Shown piece by piece: positions 15,487 to 22,292 of a DNA stretch of 64,000 nucleotides. The stretch covers positions 62,001 through 126,000 of the forward strand of contig NW_026852705.1 in NCBI RefSeq assembly GCF_026571515.1, in the 5' to 3' direction. Position 1 is the stretch's first letter. Each line of letters begins with the position of its first letter. The translations under genes and the position numbers were made by a program. The notes beneath the pieces are model-generated. The model was given only the letters and a program-made list of their open reading frames with translations, was not told where the DNA came from and ran no database searches. This stretch comes from Ruditapes philippinarum. Taxonomy: Eukaryota.

Positions 15487-17180
15487 ACTTGCCATATTTT
15501 AAGAAAATTATATTTATTCATTTTAGTAAAGAGTATAAAACATTTGAATGGTGTGTAATTTTTATTATTTATTGAATCAAAGATGCTTCTTATCAGTTGA
15601 GATGTCATGGATTTTCAAAGATTTACTACAGGACATATACATATGCTAGATTGCTTCAATGCCATCATTGTCATTGTGATATTTTTACTTAATTCTCATT
15701 TGTTTATATAAAGTTAGTCATAAGTACTAAAATAAAGTGATCTTAAACAATAAAATCGTTCATTGTTGAACATAGAAATGCAAACATAACTTAATATATG
15801 GGACTGGAAAATGTAATGATACATTTTGAGAAACCTTGCATAAAAATTGTGCAGCTGGAATGTACATTTTTGCGTTTTCTTTTTCAAGAAAGGCATGATA
15901 TCAATTCTATATATATAACAGATGACGTAACTTTTGTGACTCATGGCACTTAATTCATGGAAACATAATATATTTAATATTATTGAATCACGCATCGAAT
16001 TTTACCGTGGTAATGAACATCTTTTTACCACCTAAACCTAGACTTACTTTACGGCATCTCAGAAAGGATATATTAGCGTTCCACTCTAAATTTGTTTTAG
16101 TTCCGGCAGACAAGGCGGCCAATAACATAATCATTGTATGACGTATTCATTATATAAATGTTTTACAAAATGAACTTAACAGCACCAATACTTATTCTAA
16201 AACCGTTCTTTCTGAAAGAGATATTGTGAACAGTCATATTTCTAGTATTTCTAACTTTAAAGTACGTGTTGATGAGAAAGAGCTTAAACTTCCTATCATG
16301 TACTGGATTCCAAAATTACATAAACATCCATATAAAGCCCGCTTTATTGCTAATTCTTTATCTTGTACTACCAGTAATCTTTCTATTTTATTGACTTCTT
16401 GTCTTACTGCCATCAAGACACATGTAATTAGATACTGTGAAACTGTTTATGAAAATACGGGCAAAAATCTGTTTTGGTCTATTAAAAATTCAACTGAAAT
16501 TTTAGATAAGTTTAAAGTTAAGAATTATCAAGCTTCATCTGTAAGTACTTACGATTTCTCTACCTTATATACAACATTGCCGCATAATCTTATAAATGAT
16601 AAATTAGTATCTTTAATTCAAAAAACATTTGCAAGAGAACAGGTCACGTTTCTTGCTTGCAATTCAAAGAAGGCTTTCTTTACCAATGTTATCATTAAAC
16701 AATATACAATGTGGACCTGTGACGAAGTTTGTAAAGCACTTTCTTTTTTATTAGATAACATTTTTGTCAGGTTTGGTAATACAGTTTTCAAACAGGTAAT
16801 AGGCATTCCAATGGGAACTAATTGTGCCCCCCTGATAGCTGATTTATTTCTTTATTGCTATGAGAGGGATTTTATGTTAAGTCTTTCCCCTACTTCGCAT
16901 CAGGAAATTATACATGCATTTAACAACACTTCCCGCTACCTAGATGATATTTTTAACATGAATAATCCTTATTTCGATCAATTGGTTTCTAAAATATATC
17001 CCAGTGAACTTAAATTGAATAAAACTAACTCTTCAGACGTTATTACATCTTTTTTAGATTTAAACATTTCTATCATTAACAATACTATAGTAACTAAAAT
17101 CTACGATAAAAGAGATGATTTTGATTTTAATATTGTTAACTATCCACATTTAGATGGAGATGTACCTCATGCTACATCAT

Positions 17181-19912
17181 CACCGTAGGGAACGTGTTAC
17201 AGTATCGCGTTTTTCGGTTACAGTATAGAATTTTCAAGATGGAGGATTATTTGTGGGAAGAGAGGTAGGTGATTTTTATTCAGGTCCATACTACTAGTAG
17301 TGTAGTTTCTAAAAGATGTTTTTGTGCTTTGCTTGTAAGGAACAGAATCCGGTATCTAGTCATATATTTCTTTAGACCCTGCACCGCAGATTTATCTCTT
17401 TATGCTCTCATAAATGTGCGGATTTGACGGTTTAAAAATTTGAATCGAGAGAACAACGCATTTTTCTCCCATTCCGACATTATTTAAGCATGTCTAGATA
17501 AAGTAAATCTACAAAACGTTAGTCCTTTATGTTTAGAAACGTTTATAAACGTGTATAAAACGTTTTACCAGTTGAACCTATTTTCCTGTTGGTAAAATGC
17601 GTTTGAAAAAATAAACAATGTTACAGTATAGAGCGAGGTTAATTTTGAATGGTTACAGCATAGACCTAGCGACTTTGATCCAATTTTGTTACAGTTTATA
17701 CCCAGATTTCGGTTACAGTTTAGATACTTGCCAAATTTCAAACAAAGTTCGTGTATCCATTATTTTTATGAAATAACTCATACCTTTCTATTTAATACAT
17801 TCTTGAAAGGTTGTATTACTTTTTTTCTTCAGCAGAAAAGTGATAGTTTGCTATTTTTCTTACTTTAAGTTTCAGATTGAGACTTTTTGCAGAATAAGTA
17901 ATGTCCTAAGTAAGGACTGTTTTCACGACAACAACAGTAACTTTTATCGAATTGTAATGAGAGAAGAAAGATTATTGCTTGATTTCATTACACATTATAA
18001 TAATGCCTATTAGTAATAAAATAGAGAAAAAAGAATCCTTAACAGAAGTCCAACACGGAAAACATGAAAATGTTGCAGGCTCAGTTTGACTAAACCTGTT
18101 CATGGACGGTAGTGGTAACTGCAAGCTACCATTCACGCCTCCTAGCACCGATTTCAGCAGAATTCACATTATATATGAACTTGTACACTTCAGATTTTTT
18201 AACATCTGTGGATGTGTTCATATGGCGGTTATCATGGAACCTTCAATGTGACACGTTATTGCCATTCTATGAAAAGCGGCATATTACCCCCAGGTTAAAA
18301 ATTGCGTGTGCCATAAACGAGAATACAATGAGTGAAACTAAACAAAATGAAATTTTGAGAGGGGATCGGCGGTTATGAAGCCTGCATACCATAGATAAGC
18401 TGTCAAAAGACACAATTAACAATCAGGCAATACCCTAAGAATGATTAAACAGTATTTAAGTGAGCAATACTGCAACCTTAAATTCTATTTTAAGTTGGAA
18501 TTTCCATCTACCATAATGTATTTTGTAAGTATTTAAAAGGGTTTATGAACATTTTCAATTTTGTTGTGTTGGAATTTCTTTAGGGATTCTGTTTAACTCT
18601 ATTTTGTTACGTTTGGCTTTCTTGGATTTTAAGTTTCAACGACACTGAGGTCATGTGAAAACATTCCTGCTTTAGTGTAAAGAAAGACCCCAGATACCCT
18701 TTGTGAAACATTTCAGACACGAGCGCCTGACTAGAACCACCGACCTTCCGTAAATTAGCTTGATAGATTCCTCACATACAAAGAATCCAAAGTCATGATT
18801 GGATTTCAACTACAGCAGTAAATGAAAGATGATTTGAAGTCGACGGCCTTATCCCGACTCTGCCACTATTATGTACCTCCATCACTAGAGAAGATATTGT
18901 AATTGTCTGACCTTAATTTATACTCTATAACTTTCAATATTATTTTCTTTTTCAGAAACATGAAAACTGCTATACAGGATGTCTGAAATAAAAAAAACGA
19001 CTTTTAATTTTATAATGACAAAATAATCGTAACTTCAACAAAGAAGCATTCGAAATGACGCCATGATCATGATTTGATTTGAATGTTTTTGGTTCGAGAT
19101 GAGAAGGGTCTTTAAACATTGGCTTTTTTCAAAATCTATGTTTTGGGTTTTCGTATCCCCGATTGCAACCGAAACCATTTGAACAACTTAATTGGTAGAA
19201 AGTCATGTAAATTTCATCACATTTAGTCAAGTAGTTATACTGAGCGGATGAGATTGCACACACATGTGTACGACAGACGGCCGAAAAGCCATCGTGCCAA
19301 TAAGCTCACAGAGATTTAAAAGTCTATGTAACATTCATACATTTTACCTAGTATAATTATATAGAAAATATCGAAGTCTAAACTGTAACCGAAATCTGGG
19401 TAGAAACTGTAACAAAATTGGATCAAAGTCGCTAGGTCTATGCTGTAACCCTGCACAAATTATCTCGCTCTATACTGTAACATTGTTTATTTTTTCAAAC
19501 GCATTTTACCAACAGGAAAATAGGTTCAACTGGTCATTTACTTTTATAAACGTTTCCTAACATAAAGGACTAACGTTTTGCAGATTTACTTTTTCTAGGC
19601 ATGCATAAATAATGTCGAAATTGCAGAAAAATGCGTTGGTCTCTCGATTCAAATTTTCAAACTGTCAAATCTGCAAATTTATGAGACAATATAGCGATAA
19701 ATCTGCGGTGCAGGGTCTGAAGAAATATATGACTAGATACCGGATTCTGTTCCTAACAAGCAAAGCACAAAAACATCTTTTAGAAACTAAACTACTTGTA
19801 GTATGGACCGGAATAAAAATCACCTACCTCTCTTCCCAACAAATAATCCTCCATCTTTAAAATTCTATACTGTAACCGAAAAACGCGATACTGTAACACG
19901 TTCCCTACGGTG
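17181..19912. mobile_element. Non-autonomous DNA transposon, ~545-bp TIRs, CAC...GTG ends, 5-bp TSD ATCAT (Transib-like signature)
   Basis: Left end CACCGTAGGGAACGTGTTACAG is the reverse complement of the right end finishing at 19912; the inverted match spans ~17181-17724 and ~19377-19912; ATCAT at 17176-17180 and 19913-19917. Confidence 0.93.
18640..18870 (-). mobile_element. Degenerate SINE nested inside the TIR transposon
   Basis: agaaccaccgaccttccgtaa..agct.gatag..cctcacat matches the SINE at 10481-10590 and 39513-39775. Confidence 0.6.
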
Positions 19913-20342
19913 ATCATATGGGGTGTATATTTCTCAATTAATTAGATTTGCTAGGGCGTGAAGTCATGTTGATGATTTTAATGAACGCAATTTATTTATT
20001 ACTAACAAACTTCTTAAACAAGGTTATCGCTATCATAAATTGCGTAAATATTTTATTAAGATTTACCATCGTAATTCAGACTTAGTTTTAAAATTTAATT
20101 ATAATTTAAAAACTCTTTTACGACAAGGTTTTACCAAGCCTGACTTCTATGGAGATGTGGTTTACAAACTTCGTAGGATCATGGGTCATAGTAATTTTTC
20201 TGCCGTCTTCACTAAAATTATCAAACGGTTTATTAAAAGAGGTTATGACCCAATTATTTTAAGGCATACCGCATGCTTGGTGTTCAACCCTTTTACAGTT
20301 GGATGCTACGCTTTCCTCTTTTGATTACATCTGACGGACCAA

Positions 20343-20413
20343 GTGGGAGACTCTATGATGGACAGTTCTTAAAGCCCTTTGGGGACTGAATTGTCTTAAT
20401 GTTCGTCTTCTGC
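20343..20413 (+). promoter_or_regulatory. SECIS-like element (type II fold) overlapping the RT stop codon; 3' core degenerate
   Basis: ATGA 20355-58, 12 nt, AAA 20371-73. Helix II GACAGTTC/GAATTGTC, apical mini-stem CCC-TTT-GGG, helix I GTGGGAGAC/GTCTTCTGC. The 3' core reads TAAT (20397-400) instead of TGAT. Confidence 0.65.
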
Positions 20414-20626
20414 CTTGCTTCGTCGGGCCCTTGTAGGTAATTTTCTTGTTGCTCTGCCTTCCTTTAAGGCATCGAGTACTTTGGTAATGGTCATTAGGCA
20501 GTAACTTTTTCTACATATTTATATAATTTTGTATGTGTTTTATTTATTTCGTCTAATGTAACCATGACCATTGTTAGAATTTCACTTGGCGGGGATTCAT
20601 TTTATATACATTTTCGTGTGTCATTC

Positions 20627-20736
20627 AGGAACATTTTGGGGCTAAGAGTGAGGTTTGGCGCGCCTAAAACCGGTTTAAACTCCCAAGTGGTTTAACTACC
20701 ACTATCCGTTCCAAGGCGGTACCCCTTTGTGTTCCT
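20627..20736 (+). ncRNA. Twister-ribozyme-like fold (P5-type permutation) in the retroelement 3' region
   Basis: Closing stem AGGAACAT..GGGG/CCCC..GTGTTCCT; P2 GAGT/ACTC; L1 TAA and GAGG; P3 AGTGGT/ACCACT; P4 CCG/CGG with 8-nt loop TTCCAAGG; both pseudoknots can be paired. P1 is weak. Confidence 0.55.
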
Positions 20737-22292
20737 TCACGTGTTTTTCTTGTCTGTATTGTTACTTGTTTTTGGATGTTTACATGTTTTGTTATGTCTG
20801 TCTTGTTGGATTGTCGTTGACGGTAGGTATTTTCTCCCCCCCCCTTCCATTTTTAACCCCTCCCCCACCTTTTCACCCGTACAGTCCTTTTCCCTTTAAT
20901 TCCCTTATGGGCCTGTTTTTGTTTATATTATTTCACATTACATGTCCCGCTCCTTTCGCCCTTGTGTCCACTCCAGGTACTTGTTTGGTGCCTTCTGGGT
21001 GTCCTTCTTGGGTGTGTCCGGGGGCGGCGTCCAGTGAACGTTGCCTTTGCCTTGTTGATCTTTATTCTTGTTATTTCTTATCTATGTACATAAACGGACA
21101 TTTTATTTTTTCCTTGTTAAGATAGCATTTCATAAAGTTTGTGTTATCAAGTGTATGCAATGTAGGCCCTACTTTTTTCATGTTAAGTAATATTTGTGTG
21201 TGTGTGGGGGGGGGGAGATACCAGACTTACTTTTTTCTCTATGCCTCTTCTAAGAATTTTTATATTTATATTTTTAACTATTTTTATTCGTATTGGACAT
21301 TGTTATAATAATTATATGCAACAATGCATTAGAAGGCAGTGTTACAATGTTTGACTTACTCGTACATTCGGATTATTATAGATATTATCTGATTTAGTTT
21401 TAAAATAAGACACAATACTAAGAGGTTTAGATGTCCTAAAATCACCAAAATTTAAACAAATAATTGGTCCAATTTATAATTTCTGTGTATCATACTAATG
21501 ACTCCTTGCTGGAAATTCTAACTTTATAATCGTTTAGATATAGACCAATTTTTTGCCCTAGTAAAAACGAGAAGGTCTAGATCTAACGTTGATTTTAAAA
21601 AAAAAGCTCTTGTAATCGTGATTTTACAGAACCATTTATCATTTTTAATCTGATATTGATTAACAGTAAATAAAATTAATATATTTATAAAAGTAATATT
21701 AAATGTGTGCGGATTTTTGTGTGGTACATACACACATAAAATGTTCATGCAGATACATGTATAATGAAAATGTTTATCAACATAATGAAAAATGTCAACA
21801 AAGGTCGTATACACTTTTAGGCTTCAAGTGAGCCGGGTTGAAATTTGAAAAAATGGCCCATGGAGTCAATTTTCCAAGGTGTCAAATTTAATGTTACACT
21901 GGCAGTCAGTTTTATTAAACAAAATACAATGTATGTTTGTTTAAAAGTTGTCAAAATTGAGAGAGAAAAACTTTATTATGCACTATAATGTATGTGTTTT
22001 ATTTCTAACATAAAGTTTTGAATCAATAATTGGATATGTACAAGGTTTTATTTTGGTTCCATCGTGTACAATTATCAAGCATTGAAAACAATGTGATATT
22101 TGCTATCTTCCTGCAAATAAATTCGATGATTTATATCAATGTATAAAAGATAAATCAACATATTGAATGGACCACAGACTTATTTACCTTTAGATAATAC
22201 TTTAAAACTTCTTCAACTATGTCTTGGTTGAAAAAAGTAGTAGTAACAATTATACATAAAAGTATAAAGTAGCTTCTTGAACGTTTTATTTT

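Follow-up and report, generated by a model that had tools for sequence, protein, structure and literature searches.

A candidate twister-class ribozyme motif of type P5 conserved in the 3' untranslated regions of Naiad-type Penelope elements

Naiads are among the most abundant retroelements in marine invertebrates. They have been reported as a Penelope-like clade that proliferates without hammerheads, and this has been read as a hint that the ribozyme is dispensable or parasitic. Does a ribozyme of another class take the place of the hammerhead in these elements? A locus of the clam Ruditapes philippinarum raises this question. We analysed a stretch of 64,000 nucleotides of contig NW_026852705.1 (hereafter the window), in which a first-pass annotation had proposed a twister-like ribozyme at 20627-20736, within the 3' end of a Naiad-type Penelope element. 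We read this segment as a somewhat degraded copy of a twister-class motif of the circularly permuted type P5 that is conserved in Naiad 3' untranslated regions (3'UTRs) and is predicted to cleave, and give this reading a probability of roughly 0.65. The premise that Naiads are without canonical hammerheads is stated by Craig et al. 2021 (PMC8557442), who described Naiads that encode selenocysteine (Sec) and carry SECIS elements in clams and spiders.

The element in the window is a 5'-truncated Naiad-type Penelope copy of 1.16 kb on the plus strand (19913-21076). In 30 near-identical copies (94-98%) from the same 1.4-Gb genome, the alignment begins only at 19913 and ends at about 21076. Genomic copies share 3' ends at 21074-21084, and RNA read depth is close to zero beyond 21083. 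The copy opens with the C-terminal end of the Naiad reverse transcriptase (RT) reading frame (19914-20324, +), which was delimited by translation and by alignment of 767 homologues and of which the last 136 codons are kept. An in-frame TGA occupies 19959-61, the same position at which relatives carry Cys. The frame runs into a TGA at 20322-24; the stop after it, a TAA (20370-72), lies inside a SECIS element (20347-20409, +; Rfam SECIS_1, 35.6 bits, gathering 35). The SECIS overlaps the end of the reading frame (window 20322-20409), and its AUGA core is carried by the codons for DSMM. SECIS_1 matches at the equivalent place in several metagenome Naiad families (L084:910-973, L077:945-1005, L119:860-926 and L094:802-871), which suggests that the SECIS and the twister motif travel together. 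The complete reading frame of another metagenome locus, L088, whose C-terminus is 64% identical to that of the window, carries the Naiad diagnostics of Craig et al. 2021, namely an N-terminal GIY-YIG, CxC, DKA and a C-terminal RT. Thus, both the Naiad context and the SECIS upstream of the motif had been recognized correctly in the first-pass annotation. The motif itself lies in the middle of the UTR, 340 nt before the 3' end of the element, and is followed by the rest of the 3'UTR (20737-21076, +), which was delimited by copy ends and read depth.

A second family (B) in the genome yielded more than 1,345 first-look candidates, 97-99% identical to each other, and its motif is about 79% identical to that of the window. 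When a third family was sought in the genome with an exclusion pattern, only mutated or truncated copies of families A and B were returned. Upstream of the element, window 16226-17188 gave a weak RVT_1 match only (E 0.003) and the other copies compared fail to align upstream of 19913, so the long RT selenoprotein reading frame 16022-20372 may join two separate pieces. Twelve RNA reads from two runs join position 21074 head to tail to 20352 across 10 nt of filler; circular forms or partial tandem (pseudo-LTR) arrangements would give such a junction. Four genome copies (L065, L067, L072 and L074) have 5' truncation points no more than a few bases away from TGACCG (window ~20702-04); this may be no true hotspot, because the search pattern selected for such copies.

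All parts of the motif named in the first-pass annotation are present at their coordinates within 20627-20736 when the letters are checked one by one (all on the plus strand). The 5' strand of P5 (20627-20641) consists of AGGAACAT, a 3-nt internal loop and GGGG, and its 3' strand (20722-20736) of CCCC, TTT and GTGTTCCT; both were assigned from letters and duplex energies. An A-rich junction, CTAA (20642-20645), corresponds to the GUAAA/AUAAA of twisters by comparison with Schistosoma mansoni and Rfam sequences. P2 pairs GAGT (20646-20649) with ACTC (20679-20682) in four Watson-Crick pairs, G-C, A-U, G-C and U-A, and is marked by covariation at 20649:20679. It is followed by the 3' strand of L1, GAGGT (20650-20654), in which letters and comparison make G20650 the putative counterpart of the catalytic G45 and G20652-53 the partners in T1. 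At the position of P1 stand the perfect palindrome GGCGCGCC (20657-20664), as the core of a hairpin, and a second self-complementary block, AAACCGGTTT (20667-20676), whose last nucleotide is the 5' side of the predicted scissile bond. The 5' strand of L1, TAA (20676-20678), with predicted cleavage at T20676/A20677, matches the UAA of Rfam Twister-P5 and of the S. mansoni twisters. L2 reads CC (20683-20684), where the canonical twister has GC, and is complementary to its T2 partner, G20715-16. P3 is a hairpin of AGTGGT, the loop TTAACT and ACCACT (20686-20703, with 20686-91 opposite 20698-703), an optional stem of variable length. P4, CCG/CGG, encloses the 8-nt loop L4, TTCCAAGG (P4 with loop 20706-20719; L4 20709-16); this part is nearly invariant, with compensatory changes. 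In T1, CC at 20711-12 is complementary to GG at 20652-53, and the first pair is absent (U.U), leaving two Watson-Crick pairs. The window copy departs from the family majority at 20635, 20685, 20704, 20705 and 20727, which includes three core substitutions relative to its own family, and the change at 20705 breaks, in this copy alone, an A-U pair at the base of P4. Short blocks flanking P5 (window 20595-20626 and 20737-20790) are also kept between families and occur at the same places in L078-L139; they are of the TTTATTTACACTGT.CGTCT type upstream of P5 and of the TATGT.TGT type downstream.

Taken alone, the window copy is not beyond chance: its minimum free energy fold is a three-hairpin multiloop with z = -1.54. 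Comparison is decisive. We used natural copies only, with 65 metagenome loci whose encoded proteins are related to the C-terminal piece (36-79% identity). When the window 3'UTR (20325-21076) is set against these distant Naiad-type relatives, 20629-20734 is the sole block that can be aligned in the majority of them, and its conservation extends over relatives of 40-79% protein identity. The motif is present, usually about 310 nt past the end of the reading frame, in 29 of the 35 loci with at least 500 nt after that end. A covariance model built from 20 diverse copies found 41 instances, distant ones included.

The helices were then judged from these 20 copies, in which 93.7% of cells are paired and 8 pairs change on both sides; none of 500 shuffles reached the observed values, and slid controls on the same alignment gave 16-47% paired. 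RNAalifold on a plain MAFFT alignment recovered P4 only, because the variable stems were misaligned. It was replaced by anchored parsing, duplex tests of own strands against those of other families, and the covariance model. P5 varies in sequence by family yet always pairs (own strands average -20.8 and cross-family strands -12.2 kcal/mol; the own partner ranks first in 11 of 17). Beside the active site, the P2 pair 20649:20679 is U-A in ten, G-C in four, C-G in one and U.G in three sequences (18 of 20). P3 is always a hairpin, with loops of 4-84 nt and both-sided change in six of its seven pairs; such variability is expected of the optional P3 of twisters. P4 shows compensatory changes from C-G to U-A in L086 and to CTG/CAG in L135. 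TAA (20676-78) and GAGG (20650-53) are invariant in intact families. Most families outside the clade of the window have an internal P2 mismatch (A.C or U.C), and C.A occurs at the P2 pair adjoining the active site in family B, which is abundant and young. The G.U pairs assign the structure to the plus-strand, that is the sense, RNA. Covariation in P2 (at pair 20649:20679), P3, P4 and P5, which the first-pass annotation had proposed as a check, is therefore seen.

T1 and T2 are invariant in the main group; the distant loci L135 and L091 settle them. L135 shows the canonical twister core, with P2 GGGG/CCCC, L1 GAGGG, L2 GC and L4 UCCCAAGU; its T1 consists of three C-G pairs. L091 has L1 GAAGA, L4 UUCUAAGU and L2 AC, giving a T1 of U-A, C-G and U-A plus A.A and a T2 of A-U and C-G. 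Across lineages, the outer T1 pairs are either C-G or U-A, and the first T2 pair is C-G in the main group, G.U in L135, A-U in L091 and G-C in canonical twisters. An automated parse agrees with both readings. These compensatory changes bear out a type-P5 architecture with both pseudoknots, including the earlier proposal that T2 in the window is a compensatory change from canonical GC/GC.

A search with the Rfam twister models, likewise suggested at the outset, failed for the window and succeeded for the divergent homologue. Scans of the window at gathering threshold, of 801 nt and 134 nt of it at E<=10, of seven main-group loci and of L091 found no twister, twister-sister or hammerhead; the 134-nt scan matched no Rfam family of any kind. 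Twister-P5 matches L135:1294-1360 over the full model with 23.0 bits (E 0.003), which is below the gathering threshold of 37.6 bits, and its alignment reproduces the parsed P2, GAGGG, UAA, GC and L4; the covariance model of the main group finds the same site with 44 bits. A Twister-P5 search of the genome gave nothing among the 80 of 14,721 candidates that were scored, and a loose L1/P1 pattern scan of viral and genome contigs gave chance matches only, among the matches listed. Outside the window, the same genome holds many full-length matches to Rfam twister-P1 (RF03160), up to 64.4 bits (gathering 67.2, E 1.4e-11), for example at C5098:38097-38160, C8926:4222-4285 and C102:237743-238280. Three C102 matches lie 235-239 nt apart and so make up a tandem array, each unit of which holds a single twister of canonical type, in the manner of retrozymes or satellites.

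The twister class was reportedly defined by Roth and colleagues in 2014. The Naiad core matches the published S. mansoni twisters segment by segment, with about 28 of 30 core positions in agreement by our own count. Rules derived from three-dimensional structures also hold: a 4-bp P2, an A.G pair, a 3-bp P4 plus a G-C pair, a U.A and two bulged T2 bases. P4/L4 is of the UCCCAAGC type, and the window sequence, CCG TTCCAAGG CGG, fits both the Rfam consensus and the structural rules. Other classes were tried and rejected. The sole CTGA is followed by CCG (CTGACCG), and no Rfam hammerhead match exists in the window or the 134-nt scan; twister-sister has no Rfam match either and is without pseudoknots, whereas those of the motif covary. 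Judged from these comparisons, the fold is very likely that of a twister. A reader seeking a twister might have fitted one by chance to a segment with so modest a single-copy score and no Rfam match of its own. We give this hardly any credence, given the conservation, the covariation, the Rfam match on a divergent homologue and the position-by-position likeness to published twisters.

The part of the fold that departs most from the earlier proposal is P1. An imperfect P1 of CCGG/TTGG with a U-U bulge had been put forward; its letters are present, and the pairing is contradicted by families with TTGA, TTGT or TTAG, is broken in L080, L100, L077 and L110, and is also disrupted where one or two nucleotides are inserted between CC and GG. 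What covaries at this place is a palindromic hairpin. After GAGGTT, a perfect palindrome of 8-10 nt follows in 15 of 18 families, with centres of CGCG, TGCA, GCGC, GGCC or GTAC. The second block covaries as AAACC|GGTTT, AAACT|AGTTT (L135) and AAGTC-A-GACTT (L091), and L083 has an 18-nt version, AAATTCCG-GC-CGGAATTT. A further candidate palindrome, GGTTTAAACC (20672-81), was rejected because 20679 covaries with 20649.

The blocks cannot close on themselves over a loop of 0-2 nt and thus point to pairing between two RNAs. In cofolding, the dimers were modestly more stable than shuffled sequences (mean z = -1.9). In addition, AACC (20668-71) is complementary to GGTT (20652-55), and the resulting helix would engage the guanines needed for T1. 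According to published structural work, twisters can cleave without P1. In the hammerheads of Penelope elements, the loop of stem III is palindromic and cleavage takes place in dimers (Cervera and de la Pena 2014; Lunse et al. 2017). By analogy, the self-complementary blocks at the P1 position suggest a dimer-dependent action like that of Penelope hammerheads.

Spacerless perfect palindromes, which cannot form intramolecular RNA hairpins across their centres, could alternatively act at the DNA level, as protein-binding or hairpin sites for integration or second-strand synthesis, with the RNA fold being incidental. We consider this very improbable: every G.U pair in P2, P3 or P5 would read as an A.C mismatch on the opposite strand, covariation reaches non-palindromic helices and the pseudoknots, and an RNA family model matches the L135 motif.

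How, then, would a type-P5 twister motif work in Naiads? Comparison shows a long closing helix P5 that encloses P2, the variable P3 and P4, and T1 (L4 with L1) and T2 (L4 with L2) gather the conserved loops. The sense RNA is predicted to cleave itself between U20676 and A20677, with G20650 and A20677 presumably acting as G45 and A7 of the twister. The two self-complementary blocks would replace the canonical P1, and AACC at 20668-71 could tie up the T1 guanines. A monomer of the motif is thus probably inactive, and activity may be switched on in RNA dimers, in tandem transcripts or with the protein of the element. It would then serve Naiads as the hammerhead serves other Penelope-like elements. 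In a more specific form, the motif would be a dimer-gated permuted twister, in which AACC blocks T1 in a single RNA and the palindromes, pairing in trans, free T1 and build P1. We entertain this version tentatively and lean somewhat against it. If true, it would be the first twister to work as a dimer, in parallel to the dimeric Penelope hammerheads, and would imply that some kind of self-cleaving ribozyme is required by Penelope-like elements; the near-identical core would likewise be a link by descent or transfer to the Schistosoma retrotransposon twisters.

Traces of cleavage were sought in RNA and in genomic copies. In four RNA-seq runs of the same species, in which most reads come from family B and of which two deep libraries look unstranded, no read starts or ends and no depth dip were found at 20676/77; read depth is flat, about 100+80, over 20642-20743. 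Within 20404-20610, depth is 10-20x higher where the window matches family B, and about 2,600 reads per run depart from the window sequence at 20610 into family-B letters, from which family B appears far more represented in RNA than the family of the window itself. Genomic copies show no excess starting at 20677: one break was found there and one at each of two control positions, versus 183 intact copies. The first-pass annotation had expected transcript and element ends to map to 20676/77; no such accumulation is seen in these data. Its picture of a "Sec-recoded, ribozyme-processed retroelement RNA" holds for the recoding, already published by Craig et al. 2021 (PMC8557442), and is a prediction for the processing.

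Several observations count against a cleaving type-P5 motif: the P2 mismatches, a T1 of two Watson-Crick pairs and a competing GGTT/AACC helix that would block it, the lack of a helix adjoining the scissile bond in the monomer, the missing Rfam twister match for the window, seven main-group loci and L091, the flat RNA depth and the unremarkable copy breaks. The absence of a cleavage trace in RNA reads and of copies that begin at the cut site, together with P2 mismatches fixed in successful families, would also follow if a twister-derived fold no longer cleaved and was kept as a handle for the reverse transcriptase or ribonucleoprotein, or as a dimerisation or packaging signal with the two conserved palindromes as dimer linkage. 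A canonical Penelope element offers a precedent, in which hammerhead and RNA-binding region overlap and insertion in vitro survives mutation of the ribozyme (PMC11167929). We regard such a non-cleaving fold as unlikely, though well worth weighing. UAA, GAGG and the L4 loop, from which the active site of a twister is built, are precisely the parts that stay invariant, and compensatory change maintains both pseudoknots. Moreover, Frangieh et al. 2024 (PMC11167929) found that a Penelope hammerhead validated in vitro, which is assisted by protein, likewise shows no RNA-seq ends at its cut site, so the missing read ends are a weak negative. On balance, self-cleavage of the twister-class motif in some form is likely.

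Among the papers searched, none combines twister, Naiad and ribozyme, in line with the earlier impression that a Naiad twister had not been described. In a paper of November 2026, hammerheads are still the sole ribozymes cited for Penelope-like elements, and twister is mentioned for Perere-3 alone. From its sequence, the Naiad motif appears to be a variant form within a known ribozyme class, with Naiads as a new host, and it may explain why these elements miss the hammerhead of their relatives. A conserved twister in the equivalent region would reverse the reading of the hammerhead as dispensable or parasitic. If so, a single class of retroelements would have acquired ribozymes of two unrelated classes at the same site, an argument that either self-cleavage or the fold as such is required. 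The motif would also add a second retrotransposon host to the twister class, whose biology is largely obscure, and would be a natural animal example of type P5, in which the T2 pair is swapped and a dimer switch can be tested. Since the standard Rfam models do not pick it up, animal genomes would now hold thousands of unannotated copies.

In its anatomy, the element resembles the Naiads of Craig et al. 2021 (PMC8557442), with in-frame UGA at conserved Cys positions, a SECIS just past or overlapping the end of the reading frame, and an N-terminal GIY-YIG, CxC and DKA; it differs by the added twister motif, and twister is never named in that paper. The motif shares with the type-P5 twister (Rfam RF02684; structure review PMC5408937) the order P5, A-rich junction, P2, GAGG, an insert at the P1 position, UAA, P2, L2, P3, P4/L4 and P5, as well as a 4-bp P2 (in the clade of the window), seven of eight letters of L4, T1 and T2, and an optional, variable P3. 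Unlike RF02684, it has CC instead of GC in L2, with G instead of C as partner, so that the T2 pair is swapped; a U.U stands in place of the first T1 pair, and most other families have a P2 mismatch. Instead of a P1 hairpin by the cut site it has two self-complementary blocks and the GGTT/AACC helix; the window copy scores below every Rfam threshold, and the activity of the Naiad motif is a predicted one.

The twisters of S. mansoni (PMC8501958) are nearly identical to it in UAA, the 4-nt P2, the ACUG-ended P3, CCG, GU(U/C)CCAAGC, GUAAA and GAGGG-UUGG, and they too are borne by a retrotransposon and have a poor or absent P1. They are of type P1 and lie at the 5' end of a non-LTR element, whereas the Naiad motif is of type P5 and lies in the middle of the 3'UTR of a Penelope-like element; their cut site is the 5' boundary of the element beside the target-site duplication, whereas no boundary falls at the site in Naiads. 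The Penelope hammerheads (PMC11167929) belong to a different ribozyme class, whose core and Rfam matches are absent here. Nevertheless, both are small motifs of self-cleaving ribozymes, in Naiads a predicted one, in a repeated terminal region; RNA-seq ends are missing at the cut site, in Naiads the predicted one, in both, and both carry a palindrome in the hairpin beside that site, which implies dimers.
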